Of a stretch of DNA of 64,000 nt, positions 51,412-56,629 are shown one piece after another. The DNA lies in the sequence record MN871441.1; one strand, given 5' to 3'. The notes under the pieces were generated by a model that was not told the origin of the DNA, ran no database searches, and saw only the letters and a program-made list of their open reading frames with translations. The translations under genes and the position numbers were made by a program. Each line of letters opens with the position of its first letter. Position 1 is the stretch's first letter.

Positions 51412-51555
51412 TTATTGTTCTTTATTTTTGTTAGCCTCTTTATCTTCTTCATTCTGCTTCTGTTTTTTGGTGATTGCTTCCGCCGCCACCTTAAGCAACT
51501 GAGTTAGAATTTCGAGACCTATTGTCCTAAAGAATAAAAGTACAGCGGTTTGCAT
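51412..51555 (-). CDS. 47-aa peptide with amphipathic N-half and charged tail (not in the ORF track)
   Basis: MQTAVLLFFRTIGLEILTQLLKVAAEAITKKQKQNEEDKEANKNKEQ; AAGGGG SD; fills the gap before the terminator. Confidence 0.55.
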   Translation of the reverse strand: MQTAVLLFFRTIGLEILTQLLKVAAEAITKKQKQNEEDKEANKNKEQ

Positions 51556-51566
51556 TTTAATGCCCC

Positions 51567-53063
51567 TTAAGATATTTGGATCCTAGTTGAGCGAGTGGTT
51601 ACTTGACCATAACTGTTCTTATAAATGGCGTAGTAGAAAATTGATGTGTCTAGAGTTGGGGTAACTTCTATCTCTAGATTTTTAGAATTACCTACTTCAA
51701 CACCCCTTGAGGTTTTCCATTGAACTGTGGAAAATCTATCACAATCCGATTCTATCACGACCGTATCACCAACTTGCGCGTTATATATAACTTGCGGTTG
51801 TTTCGTTATTTTAGGCGCAACCGTACTCCACCAAATTGTATCACCGACGATATCAAGAACCAGTTTTCCATCAGTAGATACCAATTTTCCATTACCTTGA
51901 TTTGAAATATTAAATAGATGACTGTTTCCATCCATGTAAATTTCAAATTGTTCAATGGTGATGTTATTACTATTTAACCCGAATACAGTATTGAGCCCTG
52001 TATCAAGACTAAGATATGGATCTGTTATTCTTGCGTAGACTTCACCGTTTACATACAACCTTATATTTTGAGCAAATCCGTTAGATACATCAAACCAAAC
52101 AGATACACCAATACTGTTATTTCTTGGTAATGGTCTTTTCAATGGTTTGGTGTGATAAACACCATCAGGAGTTTTAACCCAGAATGTGTTAGTTTCTAGA
52201 TTTATGCCCATACCAGTAGAAATACCACCAACGTTTTTTGAAGCTATCACTAGTTCTGTAGCGATATCACCAATAACAAGGCCACCAGAAACTTTATGTG
52301 TCTTGTTCGCAACCATCAAAGAACCAGTGGTAGAGAATCCAGCGTCTCTATTTAAAATAATTGCTTCGTTGGTTAAAACGTGGGGGGTTGGTTGATAATC
52401 GATCAGGATATTTGTATTTGTAACCATAGGTGAATCAAAAGAGAAATCACCATTTGTGTTATATCTAACTCCAACACCAAAGTTAAATTGTATTAGACAG
52501 TCTTTCTTTGCGGTGAAAGTAGAGTATATACGGGTTCTCTCATCACCAATTAATGGATTATTATCAAATTTAGTTTTAAATGTTAGATAATTATCAATGG
52601 GGTCACCATTGTCCATGTATATATCAGCAAGTACACCACTATGAACCAACGTAAGATCGTTGTTTTTAACCATAACGCTTGCGGTATAAGTTTTTCCAGC
52701 CTTTAACGAAATACGGGTTTGGAAGAACATTCGACTATCAATAGTTCTGAATGTATATCCTTTCGTATTTTCATTATCTTGGTTGAAGCTTATAGCAAAA
52801 GCGTTATTTCCCGTATTTGTCGAGTTATTATAAACGGTATAGCATGGTGGAACGTTTCCAATAACAACCCCGTCAGAATAACAAAAAATATCAGTACCAT
52901 TCAACATTCGACTATTTGCTAATAGGTTTTCGTCGCCAAGGTCATAAGCTCTATGCCATGCCCCATTAGAAAAAACCCACGGTACGGACCTATGCCAGTT
53001 ATTTTTATAAATGGATGGGATGGTGTCATGCACCACCCCATTTTTATACACTTTGTTAGCCAT
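51567..53063 (-). CDS. Putative virion adhesin: aromatic N-terminal docking motif, CBM/lectin-like domains, C-terminal Ig-like domain
   Basis: KVYKNG..VFSNGAW; LKAGKTYTASV.VK; LYVNG; PKITKQP..V..GDTV..VQWK..YYAIYKNSYGQV. Confidence 0.65.
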   Translation of the reverse strand: MANKVYKNGVVHDTIPSIYKNNWHRSVPWVFSNGAWHRAYDLGDENLLANSRMLNGTDIFCYSDGVVIGNVPPCYTVYNNSTNTGNNAFAISFNQDNENTKGYTFRTIDSRMFFQTRISLKAGKTYTASVMVKNNDLTLVHSGVLADIYMDNGDPIDNYLTFKTKFDNNPLIGDERTRIYSTFTAKKDCLIQFNFGVGVRYNTNGDFSFDSPMVTNTNILIDYQPTPHVLTNEAIILNRDAGFSTTGSLMVANKTHKVSGGLVIGDIATELVIASKNVGGISTGMGINLETNTFWVKTPDGVYHTKPLKRPLPRNNSIGVSVWFDVSNGFAQNIRLYVNGEVYARITDPYLSLDTGLNTVFGLNSNNITIEQFEIYMDGNSHLFNISNQGNGKLVSTDGKLVLDIVGDTIWWSTVAPKITKQPQVIYNAQVGDTVVIESDCDRFSTVQWKTSRGVEVGNSKNLEIEVTPTLDTSIFYYAIYKNSYGQVTTRSTRIQIS

Positions 53064-53074
53064 CGTAAACCCTT

Positions 53075-56000
53075 TTAGTTGATGAATTCGAAGAACACAT
53101 CACCTTCTTTAGGACTGGTCGGTGCGTCTGTAGCAAAATCACCGTAGTAATACGCTCTTGTCCACTGACCATCTTGTCTTACGTACTTGTTTCCGTCTGC
53201 TGGTGCTTCGAAACTATCCTTTGTGAGGACTTTATCGTTATTGATTGTTACCTCAGATGCGGTAATACGAACCGGTAGATCGGTGTCACCAATTGCGATA
53301 AACTTTTCTGTAGAAGGTTGCGATATACTAATTATGTTCTTATCGACATTATTTACCTGTGTGGTAATACCGAAACTATTATTGGCACCTACTTCTGCAA
53401 GCTTGAGGTTAGTTACCTTACCGTCAAACTTCATGAACGTTCTACTATCACCAATAACCATTAGCTTATCGACACCAACTGTATCCACCTTGGCTACGTT
53501 ATATCCACCAATGATGAAATCGCTGGTTTCACCAACAGAAACATCCTTGGTTGGGTCTATACCGTCATGGATTAGAGTCCATTGCCCACCCTTACGAGCG
53601 TAGAAATTCGCGTTGTTTGGTGCGTCATGTGCGTCGGTCCAAACTTTCTTGGCATCAGAACCAACACCAACAAACAGATTCCCAGTAGAATATACATTCA
53701 CTGGTGTGGTTGTGTCGCCGATCACTATTTTGGTTTGGGTACTTTCTAAAAGAGAACCATAAGATGTAGAAATTTTACTTTCTAATTTGAAATCGGATAC
53801 AGTACCACGAAGGTTTATTTTCCCTGTAGTTCCACCAATTCGAGTTGTTACGGTTGCAGAATCAACGGTAAATGCAGTAATCGTACCACTATTGGTTTTT
53901 GCCATTATAGATACGTTTTCTGCTAGGGTTATATTTCTTTCGCCTACGGCTTGCCAGAAACCAACACCATCGTCATTTACCCGAGCGTATGCCAATCCGG
54001 ACTGTGGTGCATCACCAATAATACCAGTACCAGAACCACCCTGTTCAACGACCATCCATTGGTTGTTCTTACGAGCGTAAAAACTACCATCTGCGGGTGC
54101 ATCCATACCTTGGTGCCAAACCTTAAACCGATCAACCCCAGTACCTTGAATATAAAGGTCCGTTGCAAATACGTTCGTAGTTTCAATATCACCGTATGTC
54201 AATATTCCACCAAAGTTATTGACCACGTTTAGATGTTTACCCATACCAACATTCATCTTAAACGCTTTGTCTTGGTCCATAATCAATTCGCCGACATTTC
54301 CCTTAAATGCGAGGTTTGTATTAGCAGAACCAATATTTATTGTAGTGTTATCTAATTTAATAACATCTGCGCCTGCATAACCAATTACCGCATTCTGGTT
54401 TAGGGTAAATCCATTCTCTGGGTTAACGTCGGTGATATATTTTTTGTAGTTCCCAATATGCAGAACATCAAATTCACCGGTTGGTGTGTTATACTTGAAA
54501 GAATCGATATCCTTACCAACCATAACTATATTCTTATCACTCTGACCAACTTTTATAGTTTGATCGGTAGAGCCAAGAATAGTTTTCCCATATTTTCTGA
54601 TATCAGAGGTTGTATCAAGAGAAATATTTCCGATAATGTCGCCGACTATACGGAGTTTGGTTGTTCCGTTATGACCAAAGGTCGGGATATATTTCCCATC
54701 AGAACCAGTAGAATAAGAAACAAGTGTGGTTCCGTCGATGGCGGTAATCTTATTGTTATCACCAACCACAAAGTTAGTGGTAAACAAATCTCGCCATACC
54801 CAGTTAGCACCATCATATTCTCGCGACCATACAGCACCAAGCCGAGTTTCTGTTGGGTTAGGGATATATCCAGCACCATTCTTATAATCACGGTACATCT
54901 GTTCATACATATCTTTCGATGCTTGATATGAACCAATTCTACGGTAATCGTCGTCAGCGACGTTTTTTGTCCCTTCTACCTTGATAACCAAACCTGTGTT
55001 TGGATTACCTACGGTATTTTGTAGATCCTCAATAGAAGTTCTATATTCGACGTTAACAGTAGTTGATATACTCGAAACACGACCATCAAGATCTTCGAAA
55101 TGTTCTTTCTCTCTCTGGTCTACTTCTTTAACTTTTCCCTGCAATCCATCTAGAGGACTAGATCCTAGAATACCTTCGTTATTCTCCATACGGACACGTA
55201 GATCATTAATTCTACACCCAAGCGGTGGTATCCAGTGTGGAATCACTAGCCGAACCAAGAGAACGAGCCAAGTCATCAGACAGACCCTCGGTTTGTTTGG
55301 CGATACCACTAATATAATCTACGTCTTTCTTGACATGTAAAGAATAATCGTATAGATTACCTACGGTTTGATAAGAATCGGTTTGTACATCAAGATACTG
55401 GAGAGGGAATTCACCGTATCCAGTGTGTTCTACAAGTTCTTGAACCAAAGGTGAATTTGTTTCGTCGGCCATTTCTAAATCGCCGATACGAGAATAAATG
55501 TTCCTTGTTGGATCAAAGTTCCCACCATTTTTCAAGAGAAGTAACACGAACATCAAGGTTGACACCAGTGTTATAGTTACGTTCGATCTGACCTTTCACC
55601 CCCGAAGAAAGTGAGAGGGTCTTGTCCAAGTTCGGTTCTAATCTGGTTAACTTCTTCCCTCAAAGATGCAGGAGTTGAAGTGAAAAAAAAAAATCAAAAA
55701 AAAAAAAAAAAAAAAAAAAAAAAAAAAAAAAAAAAAAAAAAAAAATCATCATGAATATTCACCTTGTCGATAACTTCCGACATNTTAGAAAGGATTNTTT
55801 CTTGGTTTTTATCCAATNTCTCTACGTTNGTTTATAATTACCCAACATTTTTTTGATATGAAGGTCATCTGCTCGGAGAGTTCGGAATCTAAGAGATGGA
55901 TCNCCAACTCCGATATTATCNGAAATTGACTGGATTTTTGCGTCGAGGATTACNTCGGTTTCTTTGATNTCTTCAAGGATNCCNCTATGGACATCCATTT

Positions 56001-56629
56001 CGGTTTCCAAATCNCCAACTCGTTGATATAAATCTCGNCCNATTANCANNANNNTGANTANNNNNNNNGTNNANAACNTCCNACNTCTTANNANNNANNN
56101 TNTNNTGGNTNTNNNCCNATNTNNNTNCGTCAAAATCTTTATAATTACCCAACATTTTTTTGATATGAAGGTCATCNGCTCGGAGAGTTCGGAATCTAAG
56201 AGATGGATCNCCAACTCCGATATTATCNGAAATTGACTGGATTTTTGCGTCGAGGATTACNTCGGTTTCTTTGATNTCTTCAAGGATTCCGCTATGGACA
56301 TCCATTTCGGTTTCCAAATCACCAACTCGTTGATATAAATCTCGCCCATCACCAGNANAATTATATCATCATGAATATTCACCTTGTCGATAACTTCCGA
56401 CATNTTAGAAAGGATTNTTTCTTGGTTTTTATCCAATGTCTCTACGTTGTGCAGAAATTTGAGTAGAGGGGCGGTTTAAAACGCCCCCTTTATCACCAAC
56501 AATATAAGGATCTGCACCTTGTGGTTGCTCACCATTTTTAATCCATTCAACCTGTTTTTGACCAGAACCAGCAACAGGCATATCAGAAGTATATTTCAGG
56601 TCATCCAATACAGGTTTAATAATTTCCAT
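53075..56629 (-). CDS. wac: Fibritin (Wac), greatly extended with five foldon-like repeats; fragmented here by duplications, Ns and a poly-A fill
   Basis: VEWIKNGE..GAD..LNRP; FRTLR.DDL.IKKMLGNY; NIYSRI; foldon-like DAP.DG..YARK..QW repeats; CCTAAATA at 56661-56668. Confidence 0.88.
55745..56448. repeat. Duplicated wac segments (55745-55828 = 56365-56448; 55831-56037 = 56138-56344)
   Basis: The copies share Ns at the same offsets, which indicates a technical duplication. Confidence 0.9.

Follow-up and report, generated by a model that had tools for sequence, protein, structure and literature searches.

The long neck fibritin of Aeromonas phage AsSzw2 and its dedicated gp218-type partner, a possible lectin-fold tip of the whisker

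T4 fibritin, the protein of the neck whiskers, is known as an aid to tail-fibre assembly and as an environmental sensor, and since 2005 it has been asked whether the divergent C-terminal parts of the fibritins of T4-like phages serve, for example, host recognition. We consider this question at the wac (fibritin) locus of Aeromonas phage AsSzw2, where the association of a whisker with a partner protein of its own is seen most clearly. The locus lies in region 51400-56700 of the window, that is, of the whole 64,000-nucleotide stretch of sequence record MN871441.1 that was analysed; the record is deposited without annotation, and a nucleotide match assigned the region to AsSzw2 at the same coordinates. 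Here wac encodes a fibritin with a long C-terminal extension and is followed on the same strand by a gene for a protein of 498 amino acids (aa), the partner. Judged from its sequence, this is an AehI-type collar-fibre locus of a T4-like Aeromonas phage, with an architecture that is already known; the additions made here are the domain make-up of the partner, its co-occurrence with the Wac extension in 41 of 41 records, a conserved tail at the end of Wac, and a warning that wac in this record carries assembly damage.

Fourteen more records, from 11 phages (AS-yj, P19, Assk, AS-sw, AP1, G2, AS-szw, Asswx_1, AS-zj, Aszh-1 and CC2), three of which were deposited twice, match the region at 96.7-99.4% identity. 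AsSzw2 and these relatives belong to the genus Ceceduovirus, subfamily Emmerichvirinae, family Straboviridae. The reading frame of wac is broken in the AsSzw2 record as deposited, and the intact gene of AS-yj, whose DNA is 99.4% identical to the window over the region, stood in for it in the tests; residue numbers are those of its 1041-aa Wac, used as is.

What kind of fibre does this wac encode? Residues 7-407 of the intact protein align to residues 5-396 of T4 fibritin (2bsg_A; phmmer, E 6.9e-26), and it matches PHROG 1056 (E 6.6e-70); the T4-like N-terminal domain and coiled-coil shaft are thus both present. The shaft is followed by a match to the Pfam family PF07921 (Fibritin_C; E 2.4e-9, 37.7 bits against a cut-off of 21) that covers profile positions 6-92 of 93 but stops at residue 474 of 1041, so that the foldon of this Wac is not C-terminal. 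The first of five foldon-like motifs (~54794-54870) falls at the end of this match and is therefore a genuine T4-like foldon region, though an internal one. The remaining 567 residues consist of one divergent module and three homologous modules of ~125-140 aa; all of them end in a foldon-like hairpin that follows the pattern D/E-A-P-x-D/N-x-x-x-Y-x-R-x-x-G-x-W. Local alignment of the three modules with one another gave z = 9.2-14.5, a score reached by 0 of 200 shuffles. The earlier note on this DNA, made from its letters alone, had described a fibritin with a T4-like start, a long extension and five foldon-like motifs; that description held, and a regular expression recovered motifs 2-5 where the note had placed them.

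The foldon-like motifs exceed what chance would give, because they match the T4 foldon and foldon-bearing PDB entries, stand in homologous modules and keep their key residues. Residues 700-745 match foldon-tagged PDB constructs (E 0.0065), and the key hairpin residues are invariant across an alignment of the Wac proteins of AS-yj, CC2, 65, Aeh1, S13 and VmeM-32 (26-59% identity to AS-yj, with CC2 near-identical). Hairpin 3 scores 0.1 bit with the hidden Markov model (HMM) of the hairpins and is therefore the weakest of the five. An AlphaFold2 (AF2) monomer model of the extension, built from 7 sequences, is unreliable (predicted local distance difference test, pLDDT, 37.6); it is all-beta, with hairpins at the motifs. 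The matches of the extension to tail-fibre PHROGs were marginal only and centred on the hairpins. A weak homology to tail fibres has been reported for fibritins of this type (PMC3797505); tblastn with the extension at E <= 1e-3 found wac genes only. The Wac of Vibrio phage vB_VmeM-32 (L006:2613-5984) carries an insertion of ~130 aa between hairpins 2 and 3.

The extension closes in a tail of 28 residues that is, across the family, the most conserved segment of the whole protein. It is 85, 67, 42 and 60% identical to the corresponding segments of phages 65, Aeh1, S13 and VmeM-32, respectively, against 8-35% for the other Wac segments, including the neck-binding N-terminus, outside the closely related phage 65. 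Wac ends in ...DAPTSPKEGDVFFEFIN; the string that the earlier note had given as terminal is present near the C-terminus but lies 5 residues before the end.

Is the downstream gene merely a neighbour of wac, or does it belong with it? By tblastn, the 498-aa protein was found in 41 of 50,697 phage records (Aeromonas 35, Cronobacter 4, Citrobacter 1, Vibrio 1), and the Wac extension was found in the identical set. In all 41 the two adjoin on the same strand, at identities down to 27%, and two metagenomic contigs keep the same order. The two sequences also diverge in step, the identities of extension and partner forming the pairs 99/99, 71/74, 58/69, 30/38 and 28/27%. In phages 65, Aeh1, S13 and VmeM-32 the annotated order is gp12, wac (1013-1123 aa), the partner homologue and gp13. 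The family is a small one: an exhaustive profile search with the partner over 1.84 billion representatives returned ~7 full-length clusters, the remaining matches covering only its last ~85 residues within multi-Ig (immunoglobulin) proteins; word-indexed protein searches returned 6-7 close relatives each, and a scan of IMG/VR returned known isolates only. The earlier note had suggested looking at co-occurrence and co-variation of the two genes; on both counts wac and its 498-aa neighbour behave as a dedicated pair.

This pairing has a published precedent. AehI-type is one of eight types of fibritin C-terminal part recognised by Letarov & Krisch (2013, PMC3797505), building on Letarov et al. 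(2005); such fibritins are twice the length of that of T4, with a fibrous part of >900 aa, and the gene downstream of wac, Aeh1p218 (product gp218), was found in all AehI-related genomes. Expressed alone, Aeh1 fibritin went into inclusion bodies and gp218 was soluble, and when the two were co-expressed the fibritin was soluble, withstood trypsin and formed SDS-resistant oligomers (PMC3797505). The authors, citing the experiments partly as unpublished data, concluded that gp218 is a specific chaperone, and they argued that the tail-fibre-like AehI-type fibritin may share in host recognition (PMC3797505). Over 98% of its length the 498-aa protein aligns with the Aeh1p218 region, at 37.5% identity (E 6e-97), and the whole (100%) of the Wac extension aligns with Aeh1 wac, at 29.5% identity (E 2e-69). 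The two phages share the order gp12, long wac, partner and gp13, and their Wac proteins are of nearly equal length (1035 aa in Aeh1 and 1041 aa here), although Aeh1 is a Cinqassovirus and AsSzw2 a Ceceduovirus. As the AehI-type fibritin with its gp218 is already described for this named relative, the architecture is not new, an outcome that the earlier note had itself named as counting against its reading; its observations and the pairing of the two genes have stood, as has, for the lectin part at the level of the predicted fold, the lectin and Ig make-up that it proposed for the partner. The published account (PMC3797505) describes neither the partner's domains nor the five hairpins or the conserved tail.

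What, then, is the partner built of? On its own, the 498-aa sequence has no match in Pfam (the carbohydrate-binding module, CBM, and LamG families included), in NCBIfam or among PDB sequences, and matches only PHROG 9363, a family of unknown function. An AF2 model from 14 sequences (mean pLDDT 72.7) is all-beta with three domains: two beta-sandwich domains, which we call D1 and D2, and a C-terminal Ig-like sandwich (pLDDT about 66-91). Residues 1-84 have pLDDT < 50 nearly throughout, as is expected for a part that folds on another protein. The Foldseek neighbours of the model are CBM-bearing glycosidases, a Bacteroides carbohydrate-binding protein, laminin LG4-5 pairs and the lectin wings of the Vibrio cholerae sialidase; E values run from 2e-7 to 1e-4 (CBM-bearing xylanase 5g56, BACOVA_03559, laminin LG4-5, V. 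cholerae sialidase), with TM-scores of only 0.1-0.3, low values being expected when the query is a whole protein of three domains. In a library of viral structures the neighbours were ConA/LamG-like phage proteins. With moderate confidence, the model thus suggests two jelly rolls of CBM/ConA-like fold and a Hoc-type Ig domain.

The assignment of the C-terminal ~85 residues to the Ig class is firmer than that of the jelly rolls. The family profile of the partner matches the Ig domains of gp20, the Hoc-like decoration protein of Shigella phage Sf14 (E 3.7e-17), as well as multi-Ig proteins (Ig_3/I-set), and one family member (P0012) reaches 32.7 bits with Pfam Ig_2 against a cut-off of 27. Conservation within the family is higher in the N-terminal 44 residues and D1 and lower in D2 and the Ig domain. 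In VmeM-32 the partner (416 aa, L006:6001-7251) has no Ig domain, and additional tails at the C-terminus are seen in some metagenomic homologues.

How might two such proteins work together? In the mechanism that we propose, Wac is anchored at the neck by its T4-like N-terminus, and its trimeric coiled coil ends in the T4-like foldon; the chain then runs on for 567 residues as a beta fibre, in which one module after another is clamped by its foldon-like hairpin, and closes in the highly conserved 28-residue tail. The gp218-type partner would act on this extension and be needed for its correct trimeric folding, a dependence that we take from the literature on the 37%-identical homologue of Aeh1. 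We infer where the partner binds, that it remains in the virion and that it recognises glycans: it would bind the C-terminal end of Wac through its own conserved N-terminal and D1 part and stay on the tip, as T2-type gp38 adhesins do. The resulting distal head, two lectin-like jelly rolls and a Hoc-type Ig domain, would serve in weak accessory binding of cell-surface glycans.

That the partner is retained on the whisker tip as an adhesin head is a reading to which we give a little under an even chance. It agrees with the conservation of the partner's N-terminus and D1 and of the Wac tail, and with the loss of the Ig domain and the C-terminal additions seen in homologues. Four points weigh against it. 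The Aeh1 experiments were read as chaperone action, and no retained complex was reported (PMC3797505). Virion proteomics or a neck structure for any of the 41 phages was not found in the literature searched. The label 'lectin' holds at the level of the predicted fold only, given the low TM-scores and the absence of a Pfam CBM or LamG match. Finally, the partner is 99-100% identical among Ceceduoviruses from A. salmonicida, A. hydrophila and A. dhakensis, and therefore does not track the host.

Several of the same observations would suit a pure assembly chaperone, comparable to T4 gp38 or gp57A, that holds three Wac chains in register and is then released; its beta-sandwich domains would be scaffolds for the unfolded fibre and not glycan binders, and it would be absent from the virion. 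This is the published conclusion for Aeh1 gp218, drawn from the solubility and oligomer data of the co-expression (PMC3797505); strict linkage to the Wac extension and divergence in step with it fit a dedicated chaperone equally well, and so does the lack of host-linked variation among close relatives. However, a protein of ~500-600 aa with three beta-sandwich domains is unlike the known fibre chaperones, to which no Pfam, PHROG, NCBIfam or PDB match connects it, and it is exposed virion proteins that show a Hoc-type Ig domain, variable additions at the C-terminus and loss of domains. Dependence on co-expression does not separate the two readings. T4 gp38 is a chaperone of the long tail fibre that leaves after folding, whereas gp38 of the T2/S16 type stays on the tail-fibre tip as an adhesin, and the same dependence would be expected of such retained tip adhesins. 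Release after folding is quite possible, if somewhat less likely than retention.

Between the two we lean slightly to retention, because a build of 500-600 aa with two sandwiches and a Hoc-type Ig domain resembles an exposed virion module and no known fibre chaperone, because phages carry their Ig-like domains on proteins exposed to the environment (PMC3797505), and because RB43-type fibritins bear Ig domains in cis at the same end. A wider form of the retained-tip reading is that the whiskers of Aeh1, 65, CC2 and S13 are two-component fibres, in which the gp218-type protein nucleates the folding of Wac and then stays on its tail as a lectin/Ig head; we regard it as plausible, though on balance somewhat less than probable. 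If it is true, these phages would have at the neck a second surface-sensing apparatus, independent of the tail fibres and elaborated in some lineages by fibre-like genes between wac and gp13. Whiskers with a retained lectin/Ig tip would join tail fibres and capsid decoration proteins as organs that bind the host or other surfaces, which would bear on the prediction of host range from Aeromonas and Cronobacter phage genomes. If the partner is a chaperone only, it would be an unusually large, all-beta one for a beta-structured fibre.

The partner could also be a virion decoration or second fibre in its own right, bound to the capsid, as Hoc is, or to the neck and collar (gp13/gp14), its adjacency to wac being a matter of late-operon layout. 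The closest solved relatives of its Ig domain do belong to a capsid decoration protein, and other lineages have a hot spot for additional fibre-like genes between wac and gp13. Yet among the 50,697 phage records the partner never occurs without an AehI-type Wac extension, its Aeh1 homologue alters the folding of Wac when co-expressed, and no capsid- or neck-binding domain was recognised in it, which makes an independent role improbable.

The earlier note had further proposed that a P..GDxF end of the fibre and an ..NGxW start of the partner form a docking pair. By eye, the N-terminal hairpin of the partner, ..VFSNGAWHRAYDLGD (52932-53063, minus strand), resembles the last Wac hairpin and tail, ..YVRQDGQWTRAYYYGD (53078-53209, minus strand). 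An HMM of 15 Wac hairpins, however, gave the partner N-terminus -1 to 3.8 bits (E 2-50), like random ORFs (open reading frames) of the window, and an HMM of the partner N-terminus matched the partner family only, so that a foldon-like hairpin in the partner, and an N-terminal docking motif shared with other ORFs between wac and gp13 (Aeh1p220 and a 347-aa ORF of metagenome contig L007), were both rejected. As a sequence motif, then, the docking pair lacks statistical support; the two most conserved pieces of the two proteins, the N-terminal part of the partner and the Wac tail, are those to which the note had pointed.

Why is wac broken in the record analysed here? Compared with the intact 3126-nucleotide (nt) gene of AS-yj, the deposited gene has 8 inserted and 3 deleted runs, 7 of these 11 shifting the frame, for a net gain of 429 nt. 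It contains 65 ambiguous bases, a T homopolymer of 50 nt and internally duplicated segments (6 BLAST pieces). The damage is confined to the 5' part, which encodes the N-terminal domain and coiled coil; the remaining ~2.4 kb is 99.8% identical to AS-yj, and the extension is a single intact frame. The ambiguous bases, homopolymer and duplicated segments beside 2.4 kb at 99.8% identity make the break look like poor assembly, not biology. A genuine inactivation, which would make AsSzw2 a whisker-less mutant, would account for 7 frame-shifting runs without read-through, and deletions of fibritin do occur in some T4-like phages (PMC3797505). It is nevertheless very improbable: the damage bears the signature of a poor consensus, wac is intact (1041 aa) in all 14 of the closest records, and the unannotated AsSzw2 record has another 101 ambiguous bases scattered over the window outside wac (e.g. 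125-936, 7678-7732, 9788 and 12903-12960). These 101 bases make a draft-quality consensus likely, and other genes of the window may therefore contain artefactual breaks. In Aeromonas phage Ah1 (MG250483.1 / NC_055733.1) wac is annotated in two pieces, wac_1 and wac_2, which makes Ah1, after AsSzw2, the second family member whose record shows the long wac interrupted.

The features of the locus are collected in Table 1. In the relatives the order is gp8, gp9, gp10, gp11, gp12, wac, the 498-aa hypothetical gene, a 47-aa hypothetical gene and gp13-gp18, which puts the wac locus at its classic T4 position, in the interval between gp12 and gp13. The succession of wac, the closely spaced 498-aa gene, the 47-aa ORF and a terminator, as the earlier note had it, agrees with the coordinates. 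RNA folding gave the terminator hairpin -19.6 kcal/mol (z = -6.0), followed by the U-run UUUUCUCU; a consensus terminator scan missed it because of its long loop. No ORF on the plus strand of the region matched a family, and the region holds no tandem repeats except the homopolymer.

Table 1. Features of the wac locus of AsSzw2 and its neighbours, with positions in the window.
Feature	Position	Strand	Basis
gp12, upstream neighbour (short tail fibre / 'tail collar fiber protein')	56664-57971	-	PHROG 910, E 3.6e-100; annotation in relatives
wac (fibritin, neck whisker/collar fibre)	53075-56629	-	PHROG 9687/1056 'fibritin neck whisker'; T4 fibritin 2bsg_A
T4-like C-terminal region with internal foldon, residues 388-474 of 1041	54779-55039	-	Pfam PF07921 Fibritin_C
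Beta-rich Wac extension, 567 aa, residues 475-1041	53078-54778	-	Modules by local alignment; Aeh1 homology
Foldon-like hairpin 2, DAPADGSFYARKNNQW, residues 700-715	54056-54103	-	Regular expression; D, P, D, Y, R, W invariant in 6 lineages
Foldon-like hairpin 3, DAPQSGLAYARVNDDGVGFW, residues 730-749	53954-54013	-	Regular expression; degenerate, longer turn, between modules
Foldon-like hairpin 4, DAPNNANFYARKGGQW, residues 859-874	53579-53626	-	Regular expression, module alignment, family alignment
Foldon-like hairpin 5, EAPADGNKYVRQDGQW, residues 998-1013	53162-53209	-	Regular expression; aligns to T4 foldon residues 462-478
Conserved 28-aa Wac C-terminal tail (...RAYYYGDFATDAPTSPKEGDVFFEFIN)	53078-53161	-	Segment identities across the family
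498-aa ORF, Aeh1 gp218 homologue	51567-53063	-	PHROG 9363; ATG 11 nt past the wac stop
Partner, N-terminal conserved 44 aa	52932-53063	-	Family conservation
Partner, predicted jelly-roll D1	52380-52931	-	AF2 model
Partner, predicted jelly-roll D2 (ConA/LamG-like)	51828-52379	-	AF2 model, Foldseek
Partner, Ig domain	51570-51827	-	Family profile, AF2 model
47-aa ORF	51412-51555	-	PHROG 20541, unknown function
Intrinsic terminator closing the wac / 498-aa / 47-aa unit	51368-51409	-	Folding, U-run
gp13, downstream neighbour (neck protein, head-tail adaptor)	50418-51338	-	PHROG 211; annotation in relatives

The 47-aa ORF encodes an N-terminal hydrophobic helix and a tail rich in Lys and Glu. It is weakly like Aeh1p221 (28%) and like a small ORF 3' of the partner gene of VmeM-32 (23%), and because of this weak sequence likeness a small conserved protein of this kind may belong to the unit. 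The CC2-type locus thus retains a possible relative of Aeh1p221 and is without Aeh1p219 and p220.

More generally, the interval from the gp218-type gene to gp13 is a variable hot spot (Aeh1, L004:7594-8598; S13, L005:7550-8761; metagenome contig, L007:7876-12054). In S13 it holds a 403-aa protein with Pfam PTR phage-tail repeats, and in the metagenomic relative L007 it holds ORFs of 133, 902 and 347 aa, the second with a stretch that resembles the Wac extension (PHROG 9687, E 4e-13) and the third with a weak Laminin_G_3 match. Aeh1p219 has been held to lack homologues and to be perhaps a pseudogene (PMC3797505). Its family, PHROG 23703 (Aeh1p219, L004:7594-8199), matches the N-terminus of the 403-aa protein of S13 (E 3.4e-5) and the C-terminal 200 aa of the metagenomic 902-aa ORF (E 5e-6). 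The ORFs of this interval look like further fibre-like components in some lineages.

How does the locus compare with known systems? With T4 fibritin (gpwac, 487 aa; PDB 2bsg / 1ox3) the Wac of the AsSzw2 type shares the N-terminal domain, the segmented coiled coil and the Fibritin_C/foldon region. The T4 foldon is terminal, whereas here it is internal, with 567 residues and another four foldon-like hairpins beyond it; AehI-type fibritin, unlike that of T4, also does not fold on its own (PMC3797505). More than one foldon motif per Wac is found in JS98-type fibritin as well (PMC3797505), but the two motifs of the JS98 fibritin are spaced by a coiled coil and it folds unaided, whereas here there are five with beta-rich modules between them, and a partner is needed. 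In RB43-type fibritins 1-3 Ig-like domains are fused in cis to the C-terminus of Wac (PMC3797505); here there is a single Ig domain, which belongs to the product of the downstream gene and follows two predicted jelly-roll domains. Like gp38, the partner is encoded just downstream of a fibre gene and its product is needed for the folding of that fibre, but the fibre is a neck whisker and not a tail fibre, and the partner is about twice as large and of other folds; no Pfam, PHROG, NCBIfam or PDB match links it to the gp38 adhesins, T4 gp38, Tfa or gp57A. Hoc-like proteins (T4 Hoc; Sf14 gp20, PDB 9c2d chain S), finally, have Ig domains of the same sequence class as the partner C-terminus. They carry three of them, whereas the partner, in which a capsid-binding domain was not recognised, carries one and is strictly linked to wac.

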